A stretch of 31,074 bases of DNA. Origin: Histomonas meleagridis 2922-C6/04-290x (Eukaryota > Protista > Parabasalia). The stretch is from assembly GCA_020184695.1 (NCBI GenBank), contig JAANOX010000174.1, forward strand, positions 1 to 31,074. Direction: 5' to 3'. Positions 1,691-31,074 of the stretch are shown piece after piece. The position numbers and the translations under genes were made by a program. Below the pieces are notes generated by a model, which did not search any database, was not told the origin of the DNA, and saw only the letters and a program-made list of their open reading frames with translations. Numbering within the stretch: position 1 is the stretch's first letter; every line of letters begins with the position of its first letter.

Positions 1691-2327
1691 GAAAATCTTC
1701 AAATGAATGAAACTTTTACTTAAACTCAGGTTATTCGAGAATAAATTTTGTCATTTGATTCTGTTTAATTTGGAGCTGATGTTTAAAAATCAATAGAGTT
1801 AAGTTATAACCAAAAATTTGTATAATACTGGAAGTGCAACTATCCATGGAGCAAACGATAGAAATTTCAGAATGACGACGTGGTTTTACGTTTTCATTAG
1901 CAAATATTAAGTTTTTGATCTTCTCTGAGCTTTTTGAGATAAATAATACAGTGCGATATAAGTGAGAATAAAGCGAGACCTTATGAAGAGGAGAGATTAA
2001 CATTGTAATGATTTTTATGATAGATCTAATCACAAAATCAAACTCAATAGAGAGAGAGTTTCATGATGAGCTGAGAGGTGCGGATCCCGAAATACTAAGC
2101 TTAATCGATATGAGTAAAAAGGATGATGTTACAACTGTAATGCTGATTATGCAAAAAGATTTGTATTGTTTCTACGAAATCGAACGTACAAAAAGCTAAT
2201 CACTCGAGTTTCTTTGTCGGATTCGAAAACATTTGATGTGGATTGCGATAATTTTCTTTATCTAACTTGATTCCAGATAAAATGCTGCTCAGAAAAACTA
2301 GAAAATAAAGTGCTAAGAGAAAGAGGT

Positions 2328-2341
2328 AGAGAGAGAGAGAG
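2328..2341 (+). repeat. (AG)7 microsatellite in a purine-rich tract
   Basis: agagagagagagag read directly. Confidence 0.8.
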
Positions 2342-2759
2342 GGAGTGTTTATGCTTGGAAGGATTGGAAGTGAAAATAGTTATTATAATGCACAACCAAC
2401 TAGGACCAGAAATCAGAATTAAAGTGTATTCATTTGACTTTTTCTTGAACGCTAAATTTTGTAATGTGTTTTCTCATTATATCATCTCAATTTTGTGTTT
2501 TACAACGGCTTCACATGTCTGGCCAAACTCGAACTTTTGAAGCTATCTGTTATGATAAACCATTCAATTCAAAATCTATTCGAAAAAGTGACAGATTTTG
2601 GAGATGAGCTTCCTGTTATCGTAAATTCGAATAACCACCTTTTGATAGCGAATTCTGAGCTCATGATAAGTTGTACGATTATGAGAATCTCAAGTAGGCT
2701 GGTTCGATACAATGAGAAACATCTCGGACAAATATGTTTTCTTCATATTCAGTGCATTA

Positions 2760-3526
2760 CTCATAATAATTAGTGAGCAATTTTTATTACGCATCATGAG
2801 TTAAATATTAAATTTTAATAATGAAATTAGAAATCATGAAAGCGTATGCGAAAATTTGTGTTTTTGATGAAAAATAATTGTGCAAATGTTACTGGGAAAA
2901 TTTGAAATATTTGAAATTTGAATCAATTCAATTATGAAAAATTCATTGCCATAAATTTATAGATAATACTTTCGATTGAGATATATTCATTGGTTTATCC
3001 ATATGGATGGATCAAAGTATGACACCGTAGTGAGAAGCTTCTCAGAAAGCTTTCTAAAAAAAATTGAATTGAATGCAATAATTTATTTATTCAAAAGGTC
3101 AATAATTACAAAATACCAAATAATTTATTAATTCTTTGCGGGTTGGCACTGCCAAAGAAGAGGTAGGTTTTCTGTTGATGGATCAAGTGCCGTAATCTCT
3201 GTGATTTTTGTTGTCTGTGAATTTTTCTTCTTCCTGTTCTTCGAAATTATTGTATGCTTTTATCAATTTTCTGTTGCTATGGTAATTTCCTTCAATTCTC
3301 TGATAAAGTATGTCTTTGATTTTAAGTATTTCGTCAATTGGTTTATTTTTTCTGAACTTTTGAAAATACGTTGCTTCTTTATTTTGGATGTTTTTGAAAT
3401 TGGAGTTATATAAATATATGCGATCTCCGTTTTTGATCCCATAAAATTGGAGGGAAAAAGCTTTGACACAAATTTGTCCATTAAAGATCCATTTATGTGA
3501 ATGATCAATTGAAAGTAGAGTATCAA
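2760..3526 (-). pseudogene. Possible degraded coding remnant
   Basis: ORF 3263-3526 (-) is K/I-rich and protein-like. Further protein-like segments continue downstream with stops and frameshifts; no motif recognised. Confidence 0.2.
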
Positions 3527-6538: not shown

Positions 6539-7519
6539 TTATTCAATTATTTTATAAAATAAATCCATTGAGAATCCATCAGGAAAGTTCTTTCCTTTCG
6601 ATCGATGATGCGGCCCATCCAATTCGTTCTTATCCAAGTGCACAACGTCTAATTCATCTTCTTTTCTTAGCTTATGTAACCCGCACAGTAAAAAGTCAGT
6701 ATGCAATTGACATCTTACACATGCGTCTTCAGATTTTTCATCGAAAAGTTCAATAACGAATTCCCCTTTGATGGTAATTTCTTCATTACTAAGGTCTAAA
6801 GAATTACCATCGAAAAGTTTTGTGTATATACTTTTATCAATATATGGAATACCTTCGATTAGTGAGAAATTTATCTCGCGGCCAATTCCAGGTGAAAATA
6901 TAATTTTCATTGGTCGGATTAAATGATGGGTTGGAGACCCATTAATGCATTGGTGTTCATAATAATGTAAAAATCGAATTTGTGATGGAATCGTAATGCA
7001 CATATTCTTTGGTGATCGAGACGAATCAACTTTTCGTATGGATTCTTGGGCTGTAAGTGAACCCGTATGGATTTGATAAGCGCAATAAACAGTTCCAGAT
7101 CTACCACGACCTGCTTTACAGTGTATAAAAATTGTGCATTGTGGATCTGATTTTAAAACATTGGCAATTGCTTGACTTACAGTTTCAAAATATGATATGC
7201 GTGGTGAACAATGATCGGGAAATGGAAGAAATGTAACTTTATTGTGGAATATTGATTTATCATAATTGTCTTCATGAACATTAATTATATGATAATGTGT
7301 ACCATGTTTCTCTTCAATAAAGTCATGTATAATCCAAATGTCATTTCGCTTGATTATATCTTTAGCAGAAGGTTGGCACATCAATGCAAAATTAGGTTGT
7401 ATATAACTTAAATTTAGGAGAATTCCATTCCAGTTTGTAAATTTTACAAGAGAATCGGATTCTAGCTTTTTTTTATTAAACTCATCTAAATTTTTTATCC
7501 CATACTTCTCTGCAAACAT
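6539..7519 (-). CDS. PTEN-like (tensin-type) lipid/protein phosphatase with a C2-like C-terminal region
   Basis: P-loop HCKAGRGRSG (PTEN HCKAGKGRTG), FPDH WPD-loop equivalent and TI-loop ITIPSQIRF; 326 aa. Confidence 0.88.
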   Translation of the reverse strand: MFAEKYGIKNLDEFNKKKLESDSLVKFTNWNGILLNLSYIQPNFALMCQPSAKDIIKRNDIWIIHDFIEEKHGTHYHIINVHEDNYDKSIFHNKVTFLPFPDHCSPRISYFETVSQAIANVLKSDPQCTIFIHCKAGRGRSGTVYCAYQIHTGSLTAQESIRKVDSSRSPKNMCITIPSQIRFLHYYEHQCINGSPTHHLIRPMKIIFSPGIGREINFSLIEGIPYIDKSIYTKLFDGNSLDLSNEEITIKGEFVIELFDEKSEDACVRCQLHTDFLLCGLHKLRKEDELDVVHLDKNELDGPHHRSKGKNFPDGFSMDLFYKIIE

Positions 7520-7721: not shown

Positions 7722-8888
7722 TTAGTTGTTTTGGCTTTTACTCATGTTGTTTGCATATTTTGCTGCACCTGTAACAAATACCGACTCAGGATTAACATTG
7801 CAAAAAATCTTTTCGCCAAAGAAACCTTGTAATATTTCTTTTACAATTGGAATATTCGATGAACCTCCTGCAAGTATTACATCGTCAATATCTGCTTTTA
7901 TCATATCGGCTTTCTTGAGAACATCTTTGATTGGTCTTAATATATTTAGGAAAATTTTAGAATTAATATTTTCGAATTTTATCCGATCAATCCTCTGTAA
8001 AAAATTGGTGTCGTTATATAATGCTGGAATAGATATCATCGCTTTTTTAAGTTTTGACAGAATAACTTTTAGTTTAGATGATTGTCTCTCTAGTATACAC
8101 ATTGAACGCCTGTTATTACGAATGTCCAATCCGAATCTATCCTGGATACAATCTAATAAGTATTCCACGATGTTATCAGTTAAGGATTGACAACCAATAC
8201 TAACATCTTCAACAGCAGCGCAAATTTTGATTTTATTTTGTTTAACTTTAAGAATTGAAACTTTGAGTGTATTACCAAAATCAAATAATAGAACATTTTT
8301 TTTGTTTTCTAAAGTATCTATGGGATAATATGCAATTGCAGCTGCTATTGGTTCATCTATAATACTTACAAAATCAAGACCAGCTATTTTTGCTGCTTCT
8401 TTAATGGATTCACGTTGAATAGAATTAAAAGAAAAAGGAACAGTTATGACAGCACCCATTACAGTATCCGCTAAATATTCTTCAACAAGCACTTTTAAAT
8501 ACTTTATAAGGAATGACGAAATATCAATTGGAGAGTAAAACTTTTTTTTATGATCAAGCTCGATTTCAATCAAAGGAGTATTTTCGGCACTACGAATAAC
8601 TTTAAATGGCCATTTGTTAATATGATCTTGAATTACAGGATCATCAAACTTACGCCCAATCATAATTTGAAAATCGTATACAGTTGACTCTGGGTTGAGT
8701 AGTAAGAAATCTTCAGCGCATACACCAATAAGTATTTCATTTTCATTTGAAAATGAGACCATAGCTGAAATAGTTGGACTACCTGAATAGTCATTAATGA
8801 CCTCTATCTCACCATTTCGCGTAATTCCGACGCAGCAATATTTTGATCCTAAGTCAATAGCTATTACTTTCTTTTTACTCCTTTTCAT
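7722..8888 (-). CDS. Hsp70/DnaK-family protein, nucleotide-binding domain only, with degenerate ATPase motifs
   Basis: IDLGSKYCCVG, AVITVPFSFNSIQR, IIDEPIAAAIAY, VILAGGSSNIP and NPESVFVTGAA. The ORF ends at 388 aa with no substrate-binding domain. Confidence 0.88.
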   Translation of the reverse strand: MKRSKKKVIAIDLGSKYCCVGITRNGEIEVINDYSGSPTISAMVSFSNENEILIGVCAEDFLLLNPESTVYDFQIMIGRKFDDPVIQDHINKWPFKVIRSAENTPLIEIELDHKKKFYSPIDISSFLIKYLKVLVEEYLADTVMGAVITVPFSFNSIQRESIKEAAKIAGLDFVSIIDEPIAAAIAYYPIDTLENKKNVLLFDFGNTLKVSILKVKQNKIKICAAVEDVSIGCQSLTDNIVEYLLDCIQDRFGLDIRNNRRSMCILERQSSKLKVILSKLKKAMISIPALYNDTNFLQRIDRIKFENINSKIFLNILRPIKDVLKKADMIKADIDDVILAGGSSNIPIVKEILQGFFGEKIFCNVNPESVFVTGAAKYANNMSKSQNN

Positions 8889-18664: not shown

Positions 18665-19122
18665 TCCAATGTTACCTGAAAACACTCAGAAGCTGTCATT
18701 TTTTTTGTGAGGTTTTAATTATGCCAAACGGAAATTTTCTTATTTCAAGAATCGAATTATTTTCATTATCAAAACTCAGGTCTCATGATGCGTTAATCAA
18801 TCGTAAAGAGTATTATATGTTTAGAGTATTAAATTTTTTTTAAAAAATAAATTATCTTTAGAACATATTGACAATAAAATCATTTTTGATACATAATTTT
18901 AATTTCATCCAATATTTCGTATTAATTTTTTAATTTATCAAGAAATGAATCAATTTAATTTTTATTCAACCCTCAAACCGTTGAAATAGTGTACAACAAC
19001 CGTTGGTTATCCTTCACAAATTTCACAGAAACCATTTTCTTGTTTTGCTTTTTGAATGCGGGGGTGCACCAAAATGACAATCGAAAAATGTGAAATTTGT
19101 CCGCTCATTCAAAAAATGGATT

Positions 19123-19133
19123 TCATTTCACTT
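19123..19133 (+). promoter_or_regulatory. Parabasalid-type initiator (Inr) motifs upstream of actin
   Basis: Overlapping TCATTT and TCACTT within 20 nt of the actin ATG, matching the trichomonad Inr consensus TCA(C/T)(T/A). Confidence 0.6.
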
Positions 19134-19140
19134 TCATCTA

Positions 19141-20259
19141 ATGGCTGAAGACGAAGTTCAAACATTAGTTATCGATAATGGTTCTGGTATGTGCAAGGCT
19201 GGTTTCGCTGGTGATGAAGCACCACGCTCAGTTTTCCCATCAATTGTTGGTCGTCCAAAGTATGTCCAAACAATCGCCGGTGGTCAAAACAAGGATACAT
19301 ATGTTGGTGATGAAGCATGCGCTAAGGCAGGTATCCTCATCCTCAAGTACCCAATTGAACACGGTATCGTTACCAACTGGGACGATATGGAAAAGATCTG
19401 GCACCACACTTTCTACAACGAATTACGTGTTGACACAGCTGAATACCCAGTTCTTCTTACAGACGCCCCAATGAACCCAAAGGCCAACCGTGAAAAAGAT
19501 TCGAAACATTCAACGTTCCAGCATTCTATGTTGGTATCCAAGCCGTTCTTTCCCTTTACTCATCAGGTCGTACAACCGGTATCGTTTTCGATGCAGGTGA
19601 TGGTGTTTCCCACACAGTTCCAATCTACGAAGGCTACTCCCTTCCACACGCCATCATGCGTATCAACCTCGCCGGTCGTGATCTCACAGCCTACCTCCAA
19701 AAGATCCTTAACGAACGTGGTTACACCTTCACAACATCCGCCGAAAAGGAAATTGTTCGTGATATCAAGGAGAAGCACGCATATGTCGCTCTTGATTTCG
19801 ATGAAGAAATGAACAAGGCCGCCACAACATCCGAATGCGACATCTCATACACACTTCCAGATGGTAACGTCATCACCATCGCCAACGAGCGCTTCAGGTG
19901 CCCAGAACTTCTTTTCAAGCCACACTTCAACGGCTTCGAATTCGAAGGTATTGACCAAAACCCTCTTCAACTCCATCATGGCATGCGATATCGATGTCCG
20001 TAAGGATCTCTACGCTAACATTGTTCTCTCTGGTGGTACCACAATGTTCGAAGGTCTCCCAGAACGTATGGAGAAGGAAATGGTCCGCCTCGCACCACCA
20101 ACAATGAAGATCAAAGTCGTCGCCCCACCAGAACGTAAGTACGCAGTTTGGATCGGTGGCTCTATCCTTGCTTCCCTCGCCACATTCCCACAAATGGTTA
20201 TCACACGTGACGAATACAACGAAGCTGGTCCAGGAATTGTCCACCGCAAGTGCTTCTAA
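19141..20259 (+). CDS. act: Actin, with two frame disruptions in this sequence (sequencing error or pseudogene)
   Basis: [21 protein letters not shown]...IVHRKCF with strong C-ending codon bias. About 13 nt net are missing at ~19500 (after REK, before FETF), and there is a +1 base in the A-run at ~19957-19960. Confidence 0.93.
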
Positions 20260-21248: not shown

Positions 21249-21602
21249 ATGTGTACTTTGCAAAAATATTTTATTATTTTTAAATCATAGAAATATAATT
21301 TTATGTATCAACTAAACCTATTTAATATAACTTATTATAAAAGTATAAAAAAATTCAAATATGATATACAATATTTGTTTTAAAAATAATATCAGAAAAT
21401 TGCAAGTGCATTAAGATAAATAAATTTAAAAATCAACATAATTAAAATTTTAATCATAATTTTTAATATATCAAAAAATTCATTGGAATAAAAATGCGTT
21501 ATTAACAAAAAAAATTATTGTTAAAATTCATAAATAAAATGATTTTAAAAAATGATAATTAAAATAATTATTATATAATAATTATTTAAATATCTACAGG
21601 CT

Positions 21603-21676
21603 TCCTCCCTAACTCAGTTGGTTAGAGTGTCAGACTGTTAATCTGGAAGTCGTGTGTTCGAGCCACACGGGAGGAG
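21603..21676 (+). tRNA. tRNA-Asn (anticodon GTT), intact
   Basis: Full cloverleaf: acceptor TCCTCCC/GGGAGGA, D arm ACTC/GAGT, anticodon arm TCAGA-CTGTTAA-TCTGG, T arm GTGTG-TTCGAGC-CACAC, discriminator G. Confidence 0.97.
21663..21676 (+). repeat. Target-site duplication copy 1 (tRNA 3' end, CCACACGGGAGGAG)
   Basis: Exact 14-mer repeated at 24345 and 26971. The following A is also shared, so the repeat is 14-15 nt. Confidence 0.92.
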
Positions 21677-21677
21677 A

Positions 21678-24288
21678 ATGAATTTTTTTACACAGTCATT
21701 TTTACACGCTGAAAATCGAAAATATGATTCAAGACCATCTACACAACAAGATAATATACTTTTTGATCAAAACATAGCAAATTCTTCGAAATGCATACCT
21801 AATTATTTACCACAATTCATTAAGTCTACCCCTTTGCCACACTATACTCAGCCATTACTCATTAATCATATGCTTAATGTCTCAGGATTACCCTCAGGAG
21901 TCGAGATAGAAGAACAAAGATTTTACCCTTTTCGGTCCATCGACCATGGCCGTCCTTTTCAATACGAAATCCTACTTTTAAAAAATCTACATTATCGTCC
22001 TGACAAATGGTACCCATTTAATGTTGGCAACAAACCATTACCTTCATCAATTATAATTAGTGCTGACCCGAATATTAGTGTCTATTTACCTGTTTATATT
22101 TCAAATCTAGATTGCTTAATTATTCAGAGAGGTCATTGTATTATTGATCAAGATAAATGTCTTAGATTAGATGCTAGTTTAGAACCATTCAAACTTACAC
22201 AATATGAAATTGATAATAATGTTATAAATCTTAATCTTTTCTTTAACCAAAATTTATTATATTATAAGAATTTTCAACCAGTTAACATTTTTAATCATAA
22301 AACGAAATATTATAGAAGCATTGCTAAATTTTATATTACTTATTCAAATATTATTATTAATTTAAGTGAAGATTATGATTTTATTTCTAAAATCATTAAT
22401 GTTTCAAGACTTTTGATTGATTATTTACATGGTTTGAAATATAACTCAAGATATTTATTTGATACACATGATTCGATTAAATATACAATTAGTTCAAACA
22501 TGAATATTGAATCTTTCCGAGAAATATTTGCTAATACACCCAATTTATTTGAGAATATTGATGAGGAAATTAAAGATATTTTTAATAACGAACATGTGAA
22601 CCTTAAACAAAAGAATCTTGCTGTAATCAAGATGATTAATGAAAGACAAACTGAAAAGACGTATTCATCGTTTTTATATGAAAGAGATGTTCTTGGGTCT
22701 TTTACATCTAATGAATCAATATCTTTCTTAATTTCTTTATATCTACAATGCTACTTGACAGTAAGGTCGCAGTTCAATAGTTCTTTAGATATTAAGGACA
22801 ATGATGAGCATAAAGATCTGGAGTCTAATAAAGCAGAGATTAAAGAAAATCAAAAATGAAAGTTAATGAAAATTCTGATGAGAATCATATGATAAATAAT
22901 ATTGATGATAATAATGATAACGACAATGAAATTACAAATATTAAAAAAATTTGACTGATATGTTAAAATGTTTCAATATTATAATTAATTATCAAAACTT
23001 CAAATCTCATAATATATTATTCACTTTTAACTTACTTAATTCATTAACTTATCATTATCAACACCCGGAAAGTTATTGTTTCTTATTTACTGATGACGGC
23101 GTGGCTAGAGTTAAATTAAAAGAGAAGTTAATATTAGTTAAGGATCTGGATGCCTTTATTAATATATTCGATCTTGATCCAGATCCTTTAACTAATAATT
23201 TTATTGATTATTCGATTCAAGCTTTTAATCATATGTTGAATTCGAAGTATTTAATAATAATTAATTCAAAATATATGAAATTGTTTAACATTAAAAGGAA
23301 TATTTGGTTATCATTAATTCTACATATTACTTATAGAAGGAACAAAAAACCCCTTAAGCCTTCAGGTAATTGTAGATTTAGTAAATCATTATTCTATTTG
23401 ATATTAGACAATTTCATCGCTTTACCTCAATTATTATTATATACTTTATTAAATAATTCACTTCTCGACATATCAATTCTTCAGACAATTCGAATTGGAA
23501 ATATAATTATATTAGGAATTAACTTTATAACATCAATTATCCCTTATTTCTTATCTATACTATTTTACTCACTTATAAAATTGTTCAATTTATTAGTTTT
23601 TTTAATAAGCATTTATTTTATTCAATCTTCAAAGCTGTTTACCATTCTTAAACATAGTAACATTTTGGTTTCATCAAATATGATCAGAAGGAACAAAAAA
23701 CCCTATCAGCCTTCGCGTATTTGTAAATCAAACAACTTCTTTGTTTTAGATCTCATTAATTTGAAGATTTTAACAATTCTTAATCTTAATCTCAATCTCA
23801 ATCTTAATAGTTTATTATTATTGCTCATGGAAATTTATATTTTTTTAGATAAGAACATATTGTATATTTATTTGATGTATTCAAATGTAAGTGTAACAAG
23901 GAATAAATTATCAACAGAAAGTATTAATAAATATTTAAAACGAAGAAATATTTTGATTGTACTCGGAACGATCAGAAGGAACAAAAACCCTTATCAGCCT
24001 TCGCGTCTCCGCTCGTCAAACATTTTCTTTAATTTAAATATTTTATTAATTTCAGTATTGAGAAATTTGGAAACAAAGAAGATTGAAGATGAATTTGGTT
24101 CCGTTGGCTACACAGGTCTCGTTTTGCGACATAAGTTAATCCCTTTATTTTGTTCAGTCCTTAATTGGTACAATATGTTCAATATGTTCAGTGGGTTCAC
24201 TAGGTTCAGTAAGTTCATGATGCCAGTTTCCAATTGGATTGTTGGCCCCTTCCGTTGGCAACAAATCCTCAAGGTTCACACATTTTGA
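21678..24288 (+). CDS. Short-element protein (~869 aa after correcting two homopolymer indels)
   Basis: ORFs 21678-22859 and 22951-24288 are joined by a frame that is open across the same region in copy 2. The breaks lie in A-runs at ~22850 and ~22945. Confidence 0.72.
21683..21689 (+). terminator. T7 run: probable Pol III terminator for tRNA-Asn, located inside the element 5' end
   Basis: TTTTTTT begins 7 nt after the discriminator base and overlaps codons 2-5 of the element ORF (M-N-F-F-T). Confidence 0.75.
23335..24006 (+). repeat. Three dispersed ~29-37-nt internal repeats (AGAAGGAACAAAAA..CC.TA..AGCCTTC; peptide RRNK[K/N]PxxPS)
   Basis: Copies at 23335-23363, 23682-23718 and 23970-24006; the last two match at 35/37 nt. 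Also present in copy 2 at 25958-25986, 26305-26341 and 26594-26630. Confidence 0.88.
23779..23808 (+). repeat. (CTYAAT)5 hexamer repeat encoding (LN)5
   Basis: cttaatcttaatctcaatctcaatcttaat; also at 26402-26431. Confidence 0.8.
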
Positions 24289-24344
24289 TTTTAATTCCTT
24301 TTGATCTTTAAAACACCTAATTATAATGATATTTAATGAATAAA

Positions 24345-24358
24345 CCACACGGGAGGAG
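24345..24358 (+). repeat. Target-site duplication copy 2 (tRNA 3' fragment)
   Basis: CCACACGGGAGGAG, exact. Confidence 0.92.
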
Positions 24359-26970
24359 AATGAATTTTTTTACACAGTCATTTTTACACGCTGAAAATCG
24401 AAAATATGATTCAAGACCATCTACACAACAAGATAATATACTTTTTGATCAAAACATAGCAAATTCTTCGAAATGCATACCTAATTATTTACCACAATTC
24501 ATTAAGTCTACCCCTTTGCCACACTATACTCAGCCATTACTCATTAATCATATGCTTAATGTCTCAGGATTACCCTCAGGAGTCGAGATAGAAGAACAAA
24601 GATTTTACCCTTTTCGGTCCATCGACCATGGCCGTCCTTTTCAATACGAAATCCTACTTTTAAAAGGTTTACATTATCGTCCTGACAAATGGTACCCATT
24701 TAATGTTGATAACAAACCATTACCTTCATCAATTATAATTAGTGCTGACCCGAATATTAGTGTCTATTTACCTGTTTATATTTCAAATCTAGATTGCTTA
24801 ATTATTCAGAGAGGTCATTGTATTATTGATCAAGATAAATGTCTTAGATTAGATGTTAGTTTAGAACCATTCAAACTTACACAATATGAAATTGATAATA
24901 ATGTTATAAATCTTAATCTTTTCTTTAACCAAAATTTATTATATTATAAGAATTTTCAACATTCAAATATTATTATTAATTTAAGTGAAGATTATGATTT
25001 TTATTTCTAAAATCATTAATGTTTCAAGACTTTTGATTGATTATTTACATGGTTTGAAATATAACTCAAGATATTTATTTGATACACATGATTCGATTAA
25101 ATATACAATTAGTTCAAACATGAATATTGAATCTTTCCGAGAAATATTTGCTAATACACCCAAATTTATTTGAGAATATTGATGAGGAAATTAAAGATAT
25201 TTTTAATAACGAACATGTGAACCTTAAACAAAAGAATCTTGCTGTAATCAAGATGATTAATGAAAGACAAACTGAAAAGACTTATTCATCGTTTTTATAT
25301 GAAAGAGATGTTCTTGGGTCTTTTACATCTAATGAATCAATATCTTTCTTAATTTCTTTATATCTACAATGCTACTTGACAGTAAGGTCGCAGTTCAATA
25401 GTTCTTTAGATATTAAGGACAATGATGAGCATAAAGATCTGGAGTCTAATAAAGCAGAGATTAAAAAAAAAAAAAAAATGAAAGTTAATGAAAATTCTGA
25501 TGAGAATCATATGATAAATAATATTAATGACAATAATAATTATAACGACAATGAAATTACAAATATTAAAAATTTGACTGATATGTTAAAATGTTTCAAT
25601 ATTATAATTAATTATCAAAACTTCAAATCTCATAATATATTATTCACTTTTAACTTACTTAATTCATTAACTTATCATTATCAACACCCGGAAAGTTATT
25701 GTTTCTTATTTACTGATGACGGCGTGGCTAGAGTTAAATTAAAAAAGAAGTTAATATTAGTTAAGGATCTGGATGCCTTTATTAATATATTCGATCTTGA
25801 TCCAGATCCTTTAACTAATAATTTTATTGATTATTCGATTCAAGCTTTTAATCATATGTTGAATTCGAAGTATTTAATAATAATTAATTCAAAATATATG
25901 AAATTGTTTAACATTAAAAGGAATATTTGGTTATCATTAATTCTACATATTACTTATAGAAGGAACAAAAAACCCCTTAAGCCTTCAGGTAATTGTAGAT
26001 TTAGTAAATCATTATTCTATTTGATATTAGACAATTTCATCGCTTTACCTCAATTATTATTATATACTTTATTAAATAATTCACTTCTCGACATATCAAT
26101 TCTTCAGACAATTCGAATTGGAAATATAATTATCTTAGGAATTAACTTTATAACATCAATTATCCCTTATTTCTTATCTATACTATTTTACTCACTTATA
26201 AAATTGTTCAATTTATTAGTTTCTTTAATAAGCATTTATTTTATTCAATCTTCAAAGCTGTTTACCATTCTTAAACATAGTAACATTTTGGTTTCATCAA
26301 ATATGATCAGAAGGAACAAAAAACCCTATCAGCCTTCGCGTATTTGTAAATCAAACAACTTCTTTGTTTTAGATCTCATTAATTTGAAGATTTTAACAAT
26401 TCTTAATCTTAATCTCAATCTCAATCTTAATAGTTTATTATTATTGCTTATTGAAATTTATATATTTTTAGATAAGAACATATTGTATATTTATTTGATG
26501 TATTCAAATGTAAGTGTAACAAGGAATAAATTATCAACAGAAAGTATTAATAAATATTTAAAACGAAGAAATATTTTTGATTGTACTCGGAATGATCAGA
26601 AGTAACAAAAACCCTTATCAGCCTTCGCGTCTCCGCTCGTCAAACATTTTTCTTTAATTTAAATATTTTTATTAATTACAGTATTTAGAAATTTGGAAAC
26701 GAAGAAGATTGAAGATGATTTTGGTTCCGTTGGCTACACAGGTCTCGTTTTGCGACATAAGTTAATCCCTTTATTTTGTTCAGTCCTTAATTGGTACAAT
26801 ATGTTCAATATGTTCAGTGGGTTCACTAGGTTCAGTAAGTTCATGATGCCAGTTTCCAATTGGATTGTTGGCCCCTTCCGTTGGCAACAAATCCTCAAGG
26901 TTCACACATTTTGATTTTAATTCCTTTTGATCTTTAAAACACCTAATTATGATGATATTTAATGAATAAA
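24359..26970 (+). mobile_element. Short (2612 bp) tRNA-Asn-inserted element, copy 2
   Basis: Same termini as copy 1. Differs by scattered substitutions, an in-frame 63-nt deletion (copy 1 22279-22341), an in-frame 3-nt insertion and homopolymer indels. Confidence 0.8.
24360..26914 (+). CDS. Short-element protein, copy 2 (~849 aa after correcting five +1 homopolymer insertions)
   Basis: ORF pieces 24360-25010, 24985-25173, 25127-26605 and 26693-26914 are collinear with copy 1. Every break is an extra T or A in a homopolymer run. Confidence 0.68.
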
Positions 26971-26984
26971 CCACACGGGAGGAG
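26971..26984 (+). repeat. Target-site duplication copy 3 (tRNA 3' fragment)
   Basis: CCACACGGGAGGAG, exact. Confidence 0.92.
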
Positions 26985-26985
26985 A

Positions 26986-26992
26986 TTTTTTT
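26986..26992 (+). terminator. T7 run immediately after the third tRNA 3' fragment
   Basis: GGAG-A-TTTTTTT-GATTTTTC-ATG. It is either the long element's 5' end or the tRNA's original terminator. Confidence 0.55.
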
Positions 26993-27000
26993 GATTTTTC

Positions 27001-30000
27001 ATGAATATTGATTTTTTGCGTCCGAGAACCCGATTTTCGGAAATAACTCCCCCAGGGCACTCGATTGATACCAGTTTTGTTCGGTCGGAAAAAAATTATC
27101 AGATAAATATATTGCGGAAAAAATCCGACACTACTCATGAAATAACGGCACAAGACCACAGGATAGAACCGATTATTGAAGAGGAAGCCCCAGACCTCGA
27201 ACAAAAAGAAAATGATGAAGATTTTGTTCTTGAGATTAATCAAGAACTTCCATTTCAACAAGAAATTTTATTAATACGAGGTCGTCATTACCACCCAACA
27301 CCAACAAGCCCAGAAGGAACACCATTACCTCCACCACCAAATTGGGTGATTATTTCATCAGATATTAATATTCTCAGATTTTTACCTATACAATGTAATG
27401 ACTCAAATGGGGCTATTCTAGCACGAGGACAAGCTATTATTCAACATGATATATTAAGAATTAATACCCACAATCCTCCCATTCCTACAACGATAGAGGA
27501 ATTTGACAGAGGTCTACTCGATTTACGTCCTATTATAGGACCAAACAGACTTAGAGAATCCCCGTTTAGATTATTTTGGGAATGATGAACAGATTTCTCA
27601 CATTAGGAATGAAGCTCAGATCATTGTGTATAATATTCTTAATCAACAACAGATAAATATTAATTCTTCTAATAATACTTGGAATTTATTACAAATTAAT
27701 TGCAATTATGATTTTTCGAATAACTTTATAAACTCATGTTCACCAGTTCAAAACAATACCAAAATTGGTTTTATTGCATTTGGTCAAGATAACAGATCAA
27801 TTAATCAAAATAATGCAACTTTTAATTTTACTAATTCACCATTTGTTGAAGAAACAGAAGATATTCAAGCTCAGGCTATTACTTATGATTTGGATTCAGA
27901 AGAACCTTCATTTGAACCCGAACTCGAATTTCCAACAATAAATTCTGATTCTCAAGATTTTCAAGTTACTCCATCCTTTAATCCCGGAAATATCACAACT
28001 GAATCAGATTCATTAGAAGTTATACCTAAGAGAAACATTTTTAACTGCTAGTCCTAGAATTGATAAATTACATATCAGCAAAGTTAATAACATTATAACA
28101 GAAGATGCTCAAATAGATAACTTAATAAATAAACCAATTATTAATACTATTACTTCCAACCCGATTAATGAAGAACATAAAGTAATACCTATTAACAAAA
28201 CTATAATTTCTGAACCAATTAATGAAGAACACAAAGTTGAACCATTAAATAAAACTATAATTTCTAATCCAATAAAGGAAAAACAAAAGGTTGAACCAAT
28301 TAATATAACTAAAACTTCTAAACCTTTGGTAGAAAGTCATATTAATGAACCGGTTTATACAACTAAAAACTTCAAATCCTATATCTGAAAGTCATGTTGT
28401 TATACCAGAGTATCAAAACGTTACTTCAACCCCAACTGTTCTTTCTCACGATATCAAAGTTATTGAAGGTTGTAAAACTTCAGTAGCTAATGTTGAAAGT
28501 TTAAAAGTTACTGTTAATGAAGTGGATTTAACTTATGATGCTGAAATTCCTCAAATGAAAATCAATATTATCAAAGAAACTAAAACAATAGATGTTATAG
28601 TCCCAATTTTGGAATTTAATTATATCAGTGTTCCAAAATTTTTTTTACCAATTACTAATTTATCTACTTTTTCTTCAGATGATTCAACTTACAATGCTTT
28701 AGATACTTATTCAGATGATAATGTTAATCATATCACTTCTACTGATACTTCAAATAATGATCCATCAAATAATCCTTCTTTTTCCTGATCCTTCTGATTC
28801 AGAGGGTTCAGATGATTCAGATTCCGGAATTGATGATATTAGTGATTTATTACCAGATGATATTATTTATAATAAATTAATTAGTGACTTAAAACTTTGT
28901 AGATTACCTGATGATATTAAAGATTTTATTAATAAATGGAAGAATTTAAATAACTTAAATTGTTGGAAACATGAAGATATTAATTTAGCTAAACAACCAT
29001 TAATTCATATTATGATTAGAGAAAATAAAATGGTGTGCACCAGGTCAATTCCCTTGTCAATGTGAATGTTATAAATTAACTAAATCAGGTAATGATTTGA
29101 TTAGTCATATGACTAAAGTTCATAATCATAAACCTGATCAAAATCATTTATATGGTTGCATTAAATATTTAATCAATAATGATTTATATTGGAAATTAAT
29201 TTATGAAGAAGATAAACCTGAGTGTTATCGAAATAATGTTTACGTTTGTCCAATACCTAATTGTAAATATTTTTTTCAAATACAAATAAATCCCTTTTTC
29301 TCTCATATTACTTATTCTCATAAAGATTTTTGAGAAAAATGAAGAATTCTATTGGTTGGTTTTTGGTCTACAATGTTACAATATGTTAATACTTACGACA
29401 AAAATTCCTTCATGTTTAGATATAATTAAACTTAAAGAAGGTTTTTGTTTGTAAATATTGTGAAACATATTGGACTTCTGATTCTAAAGGTTTACATAAT
29501 CATTGTAAAAAAAGAATCATGCATTAAATACTATTGAAGGTACAAATTTACCTTATTATAGAATTAAATGTTGTCCTTTAATGTATTTAAATTTTTAATG
29601 AAACAGAATTAGAAGTAATTAAAAAAGATATCAAAGATTATGAAGATAAAGTGTTTATGAGTAGAACAATCACAGAAAGAGAAAGATTAGCGGTCAGAGA
29701 AATTCCTTTCATTTTAAATAATGAACAAACAAATGCTATGGAACAAAGACAAAGAAGAGAAGAAAATGACCGTATTAATTTAAATAGAGATTTACAATTA
29801 CAAGCAATTCAAAATTCCCGAACATTAAATTTAACTCCTCCAGATCAAATACATCCCCCAGTAAATTTAAATTTAATTAATAATGAATTTGATTTAAATA
29901 AAATTAAAAATTTAAATAGAGACCAATTATTAATTTTAGCTAGAAAATGGACTTCTGATAATCAAGAACAAGAATCTCAATTTATATCATTACCTAAAAC

Positions 30001-31074
30001 TTGGGGTAAAAATAATAAATTTAAAAATTAGAGCTAAATTACCAGATTTATTTAAATATAAAATCGAACCTTTAATAGAAATTTGTAAACCTCAAGATTA
30101 TAATAATTGTAATGATGAAGATTTTTATATTTGGGAAGGTTGCCTTTCTAAAATTAATATGTTAATTCGTGATGAATTAAGAGATATTTTAAAAATTCCG
30201 TTGAATAAAATGTTAAACAGAAGGAACACAGTAGTCACTAGCACAGAAGATAGAATAGATCTTCGTAACAAAGAAATGGAGACACATAATTTATGTAAAA
30301 TTACGTTTTGGTTAAACAAATTTAAAGATTTATATCATAAGCCTCAATCTCAATTTATTCTTAATACAATGTCTAAACTTCAAGAAAAGATTATTAAAAA
30401 CCATCAATTTCCTCCCGGATGAAATAAAATCTATTCTTGAAATTAATGAGCCTCAAGATATTATAAATCTAATACAATCAGCGGAAGACTATTATGAAAA
30501 TAAAATCAAATTCATTGATGCTAAAATTAAAGAAAATCAAGTTAGTAATAATAATAAAAAAAATCAAAACTATAAAGGTTTAGTACAAAATCTTTACATG
30601 GAAGATCCTAGTAGATGTTTACGTTGGTTTATCACTAATAATACGACTCCTGAATGTAAGTTAAATCCTGAAGATTTTTATGATGGAATATGGTAATAAT
30701 TGGAGTCAAGAAAAAAATTTATTAATGACTCCCAGGAATTTGATTTTTAAAGATATTATTAACCCTAATAGTAATGAATTATTATTAAATTATATTTTTT
30801 TGATGATGATAATATTAAACATGCAATTTTTCTAGATCTAATGCGGCTGCTTATGGTCCCGATGGTATTTCTAATTATATTTGGAAATTAGGAGATACTA
30901 CTACTATTAAATTAATTAAAATTACTACTAAAATTACTATGTTAACTAAAAAATGTCCTGAATTATTTAAATTAAGTAAAACAATTATGTTATACAAAAA
31001 AGGTGATGCTCAAAATCCTCATTCTTGGAGACCTATTTCTATTACTCCTACTTTTTATCGTATTTGGATGGTAT
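27001..31074 (+). CDS. Retrotransposon polyprotein (shared N-terminal domain, low-complexity and repeat region, 3x C2H2, start of RT); many single-base frameshifts; 3'-partial
   Basis: All fragments are on + and reconnect across homopolymer indels (e.g. RLF|GNDEQISH at ~27575, TK|TSNP at ~28368). The RT-containing last frame is missing from the supplied ORF track. Confidence 0.8.
28134..28404 (+). repeat. Five tandem 54-nt (18-aa) repeats inside the polyprotein
   Basis: PIINTITSNPINEEHKVI / PINKTIISEPINEEHKVE / PLNKTIISNPIKEKQKVE / PINITKTSKPLVESHINE / PVYTTKTSNPISESHVVI. Confidence 0.85.
29055..29520 (+). other. Three C2H2 zinc fingers of the retrotransposon protein
   Basis: CQCECYKLTKSGNDLISHMTKVH (29055-29123), CPIPNCKYFF...SHITYSH (29247-29321) and CKYCETYWTSDSKGLHNHCKK.H (29450-29520). 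Confidence 0.82.

Follow-up and report, generated by a model that had tools for sequence, protein, structure and literature searches.

A low-copy, protein-coding short element without reverse transcriptase at the tRNA-Asn insertion site of an R2/NeSL-like retrotransposon in Histomonas meleagridis

Site-specific retrotransposons with a restriction-like endonuclease (RLE), such as R2, are under development for transgene insertion. In mammals, HAL1 (half-L1) is a derivative of L1 that holds only open reading frame (ORF) 1 and is mobilised by the L1 ORF2 protein. For elements that target tRNA genes, NeSL-1_TV is directed to tRNA-Pro in the parabasalid Trichomonas vaginalis (Kojima and Jurka 2015, PMC4640811), and the planarian elements LIN15_SM and LIN25_SM target tRNA-Arg and tRNA-Glu, respectively (PMC4640811). 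Non-autonomous partners of rDNA-specific elements are represented by the R2 SIDEs and the R2/R1 hybrid SIDEs of Drosophila (Eickbush and Eickbush 2012, PMC3414825). Here we analysed a stretch of 31,074 nt from the parabasalid Histomonas meleagridis 2922-C6/04-290x (contig JAANOX010000174.1, assembly GCA_020184695.1; referred to as the window), in which two closely similar short elements, E1 and E2, stand between a tRNA-Asn(GTT) gene and a long retrotransposon. A first reading of the sequence (the original prediction) had taken the two for separately inserted, protein-coding cargo that is mobilised in trans by the long element.

Our analysis points to E1 and E2 as members of a low-copy family of protein-coding non-LTR (long terminal repeat) elements without reverse transcriptase (RT), which would depend on an R2/NeSL-like RLE element targeting the 3' ends of tRNA-Asn(GTT) genes. 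We put the probability of this reading at about 0.68. Observed directly were the anatomy of the elements, the repeat at their borders, their membership in a family, the failure of our searches to find an RT or endonuclease in them, an N-terminal domain (N-domain) and a 3'-terminal box in common with the long element, and the R2-like character of the latter, which we call the helper.

All units of the array lie on the + strand in the order tRNA, E1, repeat, E2, repeat, long element (Table 1). The repeat is the 15-mer CCACACGGGAGGAGA, of which the window contains exactly three exact copies where 0 are expected by chance. It consists of the last 14 nt of tRNA-Asn plus one base beyond and thus runs from the last base of the T-loop through the 3' strands of T-stem and acceptor and the discriminator to the first base past the tRNA. 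Both E1 and E2 begin with ATGAATTTTTTT and terminate with TTTAATGAATAAA, without an A-tail; in both the first base is that of the ATG start codon, directly followed by a run of seven Ts. The stop codon of E1 (TGA, 24286-24288) leaves a 3' tail of 56 nt. These termini and the position of the stop agree with the earlier description of two elements with the same start and end nucleotides, a 56-nt tail and no poly(A), and the tRNA gene together with the three exact repeats confirms that they are real insertion units at one exact site.

The same repeat connects short and long elements. In the window and the further loci L001, L002, L004, L005 and L006, both types are bordered by one and the same repeat, CCACACGGGAGGAG(A), and their 5' junctions coincide with the tRNA discriminator or lie one base beyond it. 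Locus L002 contains three long elements head to tail, with junctions that read ...GAATAAA, then CCACACGGGAGGAGA, then TTTTTTATG, and L005 is built likewise; different long subfamilies adjoin each other in L002. As the repeat stands at every stacked long-element junction in these two loci, the 15 nt are the target-site duplication of a tRNA-Asn-specific RLE retrotransposon.

The helper was characterised largely through a relative; the part of the window's own long copy that would contain the CCHC and RLE modules falls outside the window. An exhaustive search of 1.84 billion representative proteins with a profile of the shared N-domain returned 15 proteins, among them P0007 (2101 aa), which covers the window's long element with its residues 2-1291 at 36-67% identity. 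P0007 carries an RVT_1 domain (E 3e-32), the PDB entries that match it best are R2 proteins (E 4e-52) and its residues 1772-1991 align to the CCHC and RLE region of R2 (E 7e-10). On these domain and PDB matches we class the long element as R2-like with predicted RT, CCHC and RLE modules. A closer relative within H. meleagridis is P0001 (JAANOX010000183.1, annotated 'titin'), which shows 87% DNA identity to the window's long element. An exact look-up of the ORF of the window's long element retrieved no entry from the protein collection, which does not seem to include this assembly. Read depth over the 5' region suggested a helper copy number of ~20 or more. Across window positions 26980-27370 the word depth was 65-95x single-copy for the first 200 nt of the long element and ~18-27x for the next 190 nt, and the read contigs showed several different continuations after ...GGGAGGAGATTTTTT. 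The varied continuations and the high depth indicate that many elements or subfamilies have this start in common.

The full-length alignment of E1 with E2 shows 26 substitutions and 10 indels. One indel is the in-frame 63-nt segment listed in Table 1 and another a 3-nt insertion, and the rest are changes of 1-2 nt in A or T runs. The reading frame of E1 is broken in A-runs near 22851 and 22943 and its pieces together give ~870 codons, compared to a longest open frame of 128 codons in 500 shuffles of E1. The frame of E2 breaks at other T/A runs, near 24998, 25162, 26574, 26647 and 26666. Taken as a whole the short element is 2.6 kb with 98% ORF. The frame maps and the alignment therefore support three points that had been read from the sequence before: frameshifts at different homopolymers, a joint ORF of ~870 aa, and copies that differ by substitutions and by frame-preserving 63-nt and 3-nt indels. 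A short interspersed nuclear element (SINE) is ruled out by the length of 2.6 kb, the 98% ORF and the lack of a small-RNA head in Rfam; the upstream tRNA is the target and lies outside the unit.

The protein of the short element is related to the helper at its N-terminus. The core of the N-domain is 34% identical to the window's long element over 108 aa (tblastn, E 6e-13), and the first residues of the short and long proteins are also alike, with the pattern M-N/D-I/F...F-L. When we aligned the short protein to the 2101-aa helper P0007 with hhalign, the N-domain was the sole match; this comparison showed no C-terminal CCHC or PD-(D/E)xK region, and nowhere does that helper resemble the middle ~1.7 kb of the short element. 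Neither RT nor endonuclease was detected with Pfam (even at E<=10), with PDB profiles or by profile-profile comparison to the full-length helper. The absence of both enzymes from the partner ORF, as originally predicted, was thus borne out, and an autonomous RLE element is ruled out for the short unit, as the RT and nuclease searches found none. The view of the ORF as neutral cargo, in turn, was not upheld, as its first ~200 aa are homologous to the N-terminus of the helper. For the rest of the protein (~550-670 aa) there was no match in Pfam at E<=10, PHROGs, PDB profiles or two word-based database searches. The queries of the word-based searches were the N-terminal piece of E1, the metagenomic homologue P0003 described below and a profile built on the C-terminal two thirds; P0003 itself was the only protein returned.

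Structure prediction had been suggested for the consensus protein, and here the outcome was divided. The AlphaFold2 model of the N-domain (15 sequences) reached a predicted local distance difference test (pLDDT) score of 56 overall and 70-80 in the core, which is a small beta-rich domain; neither Foldseek against PDB nor an Atlas shape search gave a credible fold match for it, and the full-length model of P0003 (pLDDT 32) was unusable. We also considered a fossil RT within the short protein, based on an FTDD string and an Atlas lead to RVT_1 (0.68). This candidate is unsupported: Pfam gave nothing at E<=10, hhalign aligned the N-domain only, and the metagenome homologue has ESG at the position of DDG.

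The short and long elements also resemble each other at their 3' ends. The last 20 nt of E1 are identical to the 3' end of the long element in locus L003 at 17/20 positions, and at ~26/32 over a longer stretch; the blastn alignment begins 30 nt before the repeat, and upstream of this 3' box we found no similarity between short and long elements. The loose ends of read contigs revealed further elements at this site that end in AATGAATAAA. At the 5' side, a T-run is present in the first 15 nt of every element and the ORF starts 0-15 nt from the junction, and the first ~25 nt of L001 are closely like the long element. Rfam recognised the tRNA only, with no ribozyme at the 5' ends and no small-RNA-like head. 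Identical termini were hence found between E1 and E2 but not with respect to the long element, with which they have in common only ~20-30 nt at the 3' end and loose features at the 5' end. The 3'-end comparison that had been called for did reveal a resemblance, over the last ~20-30 nt. Mobilisation in trans is compatible with the same target-site duplication, the similar 3' end and the absence of RT and endonuclease.

The family is not confined to the pair in the window. In a gut metagenome, contig L001 encodes P0003, an uninterrupted ORF of 735 aa that is a full-length homologue of the window protein at 31-39% identity, and the same element, with three codons changed, was recovered in L006 (protein P0016), which a different project had assembled independently. 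The junction in both reads ...TTTAATGAATAAAAAA, then CCACACGGGAGGAG, then TTTTTTCATGG. A third short-type lineage (L004, protein P0009) lies directly behind a long-element 3' end and the repeat. A second H. meleagridis locus is L003, a decayed array on another JAANOX contig, in which the C-terminal coding region and the 3' end of a long element are followed by a mutated repeat CACACTGGAGGAGG, then by 1235 nt with 92% identity to the beginning of E1, by ~150 nt of a different 3' end, by a second mutated repeat and by a long element. The long-to-short junction of L003 was found letter for letter in the DNA run X4. Short elements were thus seen in tRNA-to-short, short-to-short, long-to-short and short-to-long contexts, at a second locus and in other organisms, and the scenario in which only two copies exist is ruled out by L003, L001/L006 and L004.

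Positions 8575-9970 of L003 represent an old chimera, in which the ~150 nt consist of the end of an unrelated ORF and a long-type 3' tail. A template switch could have produced this chimera, as could a deletion that spanned two neighbours. In one contig of DNA run X4 (depth 472), the same position of the short element (window 25544) is followed immediately by the repeat (26973).

We then asked whether the short ORF is a functional gene or a relic. In one view the short units would resemble SIDEs, as dead copies of the long element that arose by internal rearrangement, and their open frame would be a leftover. The 5' end (first ~600 nt, including the N-domain) and the 3' end (~30 nt) do derive from a long-type element, both copies in the window are frameshifted in the assembly, and L003 carries a decayed chimera. 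Among the codon changes between E1 and E2 we counted 7 synonymous and 16 non-synonymous ones on ~512 synonymous and ~2101 non-synonymous sites, which gives a ratio of non-synonymous to synonymous rates (dN/dS) of ~0.56 on 23 changed codons, a value not significantly below 1. The L001 homologue, however, with ~60-69% of its residues changed, keeps its 735 codons uninterrupted (a 748-codon open frame) in DNA of 23.6% GC, where shuffles reached at most 151. L001 and L006 differ by only 3 codons, too few for dN/dS, and the window and L001 are too diverged for an estimate of dS, so that for the latter pair we used the identity per codon position instead. Second positions were best conserved (0.62-0.64), followed by first (0.51-0.54) and third positions (0.45-0.50). 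This pattern together with the open frame is, as judged from the sequences, the signature of a protein kept by selection. The dN/dS check proposed at the outset gave no significant signal for the pair in the window; the distant homologue shows codon-position constraint. As the middle ~1.7 kb is also unlike the helper and the frameshifts are partly contradicted by read contigs, we regard a dead derivative as unlikely.

Part of the apparent decay of E1 and E2 is probably due to long-read homopolymer or assembly error. In contigs of public DNA and RNA runs we found one additional A at 22851, a loss of 2 nt at 22943 and a loss of 1 nt at 25159; these indels remove three of the frameshifts and the frame is open. 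In the same window the actin gene (19090-20259) is split over three reading frames, either as a pseudogene or through assembly error: at one break, near REK/FETFN, ~four residues are missing, and another consists of a single additional base in GACCAAAACCC. It is these two observations, the read contigs and the broken actin gene, that suggest assembly error, and the split actin gene limits the weight that frameshifts in this window can bear. A related H. meleagridis assembly was built from Nanopore and Illumina reads (PMC8529796).

For the transcription of the short element we examined an RNA-labelled run. It contained a 2104-nt contig (depth 19) over 22284-24385 and contigs of lower depth over the 5' part, whereas adjacent intergenic DNA, which is covered in the DNA runs, was missing. 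The expression check thus points to transcription of the short element but does not prove it. The RNA contig has the 63-nt segment, carries E2-like substitutions and is free of the E1 frameshifts; given this mix of E1 and E2 states it comes from a further copy or allele. It reads through the short 3' end and the repeat into the 5' start of a short element.

To estimate copy numbers we compared word depths. Single-copy variant contigs had a depth of ~1000, and so did one contig of X4 over the upstream flank, 21426-21625. The contigs common to the short elements had depths of 2200-3300, and extra variants of ~1000 depth were encountered only in the 5' 1.2 kb. This restriction matches the partial copy in L003, and the depths suggest ~three full short copies plus one partial, L003-like copy.

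Whether E1 and E2 were inserted separately is a narrower question, and here we rate separate insertion as little better than even. Both could go back to one inserted copy, through local tandem duplication or unequal exchange, or through a single event in which the RT jumped between templates, namely read-through RNAs with the 15-nt tail. Short-to-short junctions are far commoner than the ~1:7 ratio of short to long copies predicts: we observed them between E1 and E2, in the RNA contig and in the two metagenome contigs, whose ends close on themselves. RNA contigs that continue past the element end into the repeat indicate that RNAs with a target-derived tail exist, and the R2 RT is described to jump between templates (PMC3414825). 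Against a very recent duplicate stand the 1% difference between E1 and E2, their 63-nt and 3-nt indels and the third combination of states in the RNA contig. Furthermore, tandem duplication cannot produce the junctions between unlike elements, which are long-to-short in L003 and L004 and short-to-long in the window and which in L002 join different long subfamilies; elements do therefore stack by inserting repeatedly into the regenerated tRNA gene. Three processes could each yield short-to-short junctions, namely unequal exchange, re-insertion beside the source and template jumping, and an origin of the pair from one inserted copy is a serious possibility that we nevertheless hold to be somewhat less than even.

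The two metagenome contigs also led us to consider a different kind of mobility. L001 (2357 nt) has an overlap of 55 nt between its two ends and L006 (2380 nt) one of 77 nt, lengths that we take to be typical assembler k-mer sizes, and the unit of 2302-2303 nt with one copy of the repeat is what tandem arrays or free circles would give. The short element might accordingly move by itself as a DNA circle, with its protein as a recombinase or HUH-type nickase and the 15 nt as an attachment core. Integration at the 3' end of a tRNA gene with a duplicated end is the classic attachment pattern, as in bacterial islands, and there was a weak language-model lead from residues 200-735 of P0003 to YagK/YfjJ and Rep-like clusters (Atlas, 0.87). 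Yet the same 15 nt flank genuine RT/RLE elements, which make such duplications by staggered nicks, the short element carries the 3' box and the N-domain of the helper, and circular contigs are also expected when tandem arrays are assembled. Searches in Pfam (E<=10), PHROGs and PDB profiles revealed no integrase, Rep or HUH signal, no tyrosine or serine recombinase and no other strand-transferase domain, so that the Rep/YagK lead has no sequence support. The second Atlas query gave RVT_1 instead (see above); the two leads contradict each other, both are below the tool's own threshold and both look like noise. We consider a self-moving circle very improbable.

Mobilisation by the helper remains the best reading of the anatomy, although several observations weigh against it. 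No retrotransposition event was observed. With ~3 full copies, compared to ~20 or more of the helper by read depth, the short element is very rare, and the over-representation of short-to-short junctions suits local amplification as well as insertion. The 3' stretch in common is short, and in the metagenome lineage it shrinks to ~10-13 nt (TTT[A/G]AT..AATAAA); moreover the 3' tails showed no stable or conserved RNA fold compared to shuffles, with z-scores of ~0 or positive. Beyond the N-domain no fold or family was recognisable in the searches we made, and the dN/dS of the pair gives no significant sign of constraint. Finally, the window's own helper copy is incomplete and frameshifted in the assembly.

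For the mobilisation in trans we propose the following course of events. The helper of ~2100 aa (N-domain, peptide repeats, C2H2 fingers, RT, CCHC, RLE) would recognise the tRNA-Asn gene and nick the bottom strand, presumably at the boundary of T-loop and T-stem. Reverse transcription would be primed on an RNA that ends in ...TTTAATGAATAAA, without poly(A). The top strand would be cut 14-15 bp downstream, probably at the discriminator or one base past it, and this stagger would duplicate CCACACGGGAGGAG(A) and rebuild an intact tRNA gene upstream of each insertion. As the rebuilt gene stays a target, elements would stack head to tail. The RNA of the short element, with the same 3'-terminal box, would be copied by the helper in trans. 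The short element would keep its own ORF of ~735-870 aa with the first ~200 aa homologous to the helper N-terminus, and its protein would likely bind its own RNA or dock onto the helper; our working guess is that the N-domain might let the product bind the helper, or the element's RNA during translation.

A more far-reaching and rather doubtful extension is that the short element is a long-lived protein-coding 'satellite' or hyperparasite, which has kept the target and its duplication, a ~20-nt 3' box and a docking N-domain, and whose RNA 5' ends are made by RNase Z. The 3' box may act together with target-derived read-through sequence. The 5' ends of the RNAs of short and long elements may be cut by RNase Z from co-transcripts of tRNA and element, an idea suggested by the match in position between the 5' junction and the tRNA 3'-processing site. 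If so, RNase Z plays the part here that a ribozyme plays in R2.

In addition to the 3' box we identified a motif, AGAAGGAACAnnAAACCC...GCCTTC, which occurs three times in each of E1 and E2 and twice in the metagenome homologue. It was not found in the helper and is specific to the short element. The codons of the motif are identical in all five units of both lineages, including the GC-rich AAC and CCC, compared to an overall third-position identity between the lineages of only ~0.5. The motif is possibly an RNA hairpin, with an invariant inner stem of 5 bp and an outer stem with five compensated pairs: across the five sequences the pairing was 89%, in contrast to 80% in shuffles and 38-49% when the pairing was slid. 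With five sequences this is suggestive. The end of the ORF is also complementary to the repeat that follows it, over 11 bp in the window (24249-24259, GPFRW codons, with 24345-24357) and over 8 bp in L001 (1-8, PLSG codons, with 107-117). Such pairing in a read-through RNA would mimic the pairing of acceptor and T-stem; its folding energy is no better than that of shuffles.

Table 1. Coordinates of the tRNA target, the repeats and the elements. Positions refer to the window unless a locus is named.
Feature	Coordinates	Strand	Basis or remark
tRNA-Asn(GTT) gene, intact; target	21603-21676	+	ARAGORN; Rfam tRNA, 61.7 bits
tRNA-Asn parts	acceptor 5' strand 21603-21609; acceptor 3' strand 21669-21675; discriminator G 21676	+	
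Repeat copy 1, CCACACGGGAGGAGA; 3' end of the tRNA itself; target-site duplication	21663-21677	+	exact match
Repeat copy 2, separates E1 and E2	24345-24359	+	exact match
Repeat copy 3, separates E2 and long element	26971-26985	+	exact match
Short element E1, 2667 nt; ATG at first base, then T7 run	21678-24344	+	flanking repeats, alignment
Short element E2, 2611 nt; 99% identical to E1	24360-26970	+	flanking repeats, alignment
E1 reading frame, three pieces	21678-22856 (393 codons); 22844-22951 (~36); 22945-24288 (447 to 24285)	+	
63-nt in-frame segment, in E1 and RNA contig, not in E2	22279-22341	+	alignment
N-domain core common to long element (E1 aa 93-200)	21954-22277; E2 equivalent 24636-24959	+	tblastn
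3'-terminal box resembling long-element 3' end	24315-24344 (E1); 26941-26970 (E2)	+	blastn vs L003
Motif AGAAGGAACAnnAAACCC...GCCTTC, three per element	E1 23335, 23686, 23974 (span 23335-24016); E2 25958, 26309, 26598 (span 25958-26640)	+	encodes RRNxKPxxPS
Same motif, two in metagenome homologue	L001 1730-1772, 2042-2084		encodes RRNxKPxxPS
Long element, 5' 4.1 kb, runs off the window	26986-31074	+	tblastn with P0007, aa 2-1291
Long-element features	N-domain 27001-27585; C2H2 zinc fingers ~29040-29520; RT start ~30830-31073	+	
Coding tandem repeats of 54 nt (18 aa)	28132-28324	+	type xESLxVxPxxxEKTxxT

The 18-aa repeats of the long element also occur in P0005, P0007, P0008 and P0011, and their number varies between the relatives. 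The window consists of AT-rich eukaryotic DNA, and the ordinary genes that it carries are 14-3-3, NDK, actin, phosphatases and a fragment of Hsp70. The Hsp70-like ORF (7722-8888, - strand) covers only positions 1-373 of the 599 profile positions, and up to the PTEN-like phosphatase gene next to it (6539-7519) none of the frames showed a continuation. The published description of the H. meleagridis genome lists 23-32 retroelement fragments, or 0.01% (PMC8529796). Given this low share and the annotation of one helper ORF as 'titin', the retrotransposon system seems to have been overlooked or left unannotated in the published genome. The ORF so annotated in GenBank is the N-terminal part of a helper in L003 (10001-11416, KAH0789353.1).

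If our reading is true, the short element is a non-autonomous partner of a single-ORF RLE element with a gene of its own, which raises the question of what such a gene does for the parasite of a parasite. There is also a practical side. What an RLE enzyme needs in cis on an RNA that does not encode it is the central design question for transgene insertion with R2. A natural element of 2.3-2.7 kb that enters at one nucleotide position and leaves the tRNA gene intact would be a ready test case for these cis requirements, and we hypothesise, in line with the original prediction, that the short elements may define minimal cis-signals for gene writing.

Among the known systems, the helper is most readily compared to the NeSL and R2 groups. 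Like their members it is an RLE-type element with a single ORF that combines zinc fingers, RT, CCHC and a PD-(D/E)xK nuclease; it is specific for a tRNA gene and resides in a parabasalid. In contrast to NeSL-1_TV and the other tRNA-specific elements its target is tRNA-Asn, and the region before the RT is unusually long (~1150 aa), with an unassigned domain and peptide repeats. The best structural-database matches of the helper RT and C-terminal nuclease are R2 proteins of arthropods and birds (8gh6, 8ibw, 9dou, 9nl3), and further points of likeness to R2 are the lack of poly(A), the precise target, RNA that carries target sequence through read-through or co-transcription, and template jumping. 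R2, however, targets 28S rDNA, inactivates the unit it enters and has a 5' end defined by a ribozyme, whereas in our case the target gene is restored, Rfam gave no ribozyme and the 5' junction coincides with the 3'-processing site of the tRNA.

For the short element the closest comparisons are the SIDEs and HAL1. As with SIDEs, it uses the same site and junctions as the helper, has no enzyme of its own and is rare and low in copy number. SIDEs keep the 5' and 3' ends of the helper and are short, non-coding, plain internal deletions (PMC3414825). The short element differs from them in its length of 2.3-2.7 kb, of which nearly all is ORF, in ~1.7 kb without similarity to the helper and in an ORF that stays open at 31-39% protein identity. 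The loose likeness to HAL1 (mentioned in PMC5753468) that had been proposed holds in part: both are coding, lack RT and endonuclease, depend on an autonomous long interspersed nuclear element (LINE) and keep one protein module of it, but most of the short ORF is unrelated to the helper. HAL1 keeps the whole ORF1 protein, an RNA chaperone, of a two-ORF APE-type LINE and is not site-specific, whereas the short element retains from a single-ORF RLE element only the N-domain (~110-200 aa), which is joined to unrelated sequence, and inserts at a single nucleotide position. It has no counterpart in the description of the tRNA-specific elements (PMC4640811). While tRNA-specific NeSL-type elements are already known from parabasalids, and the helper with its target tRNA-Asn is an additional tRNA-specific member of the known R2/NeSL group of RLE elements, a conserved, coding partner without RT appears to be new.

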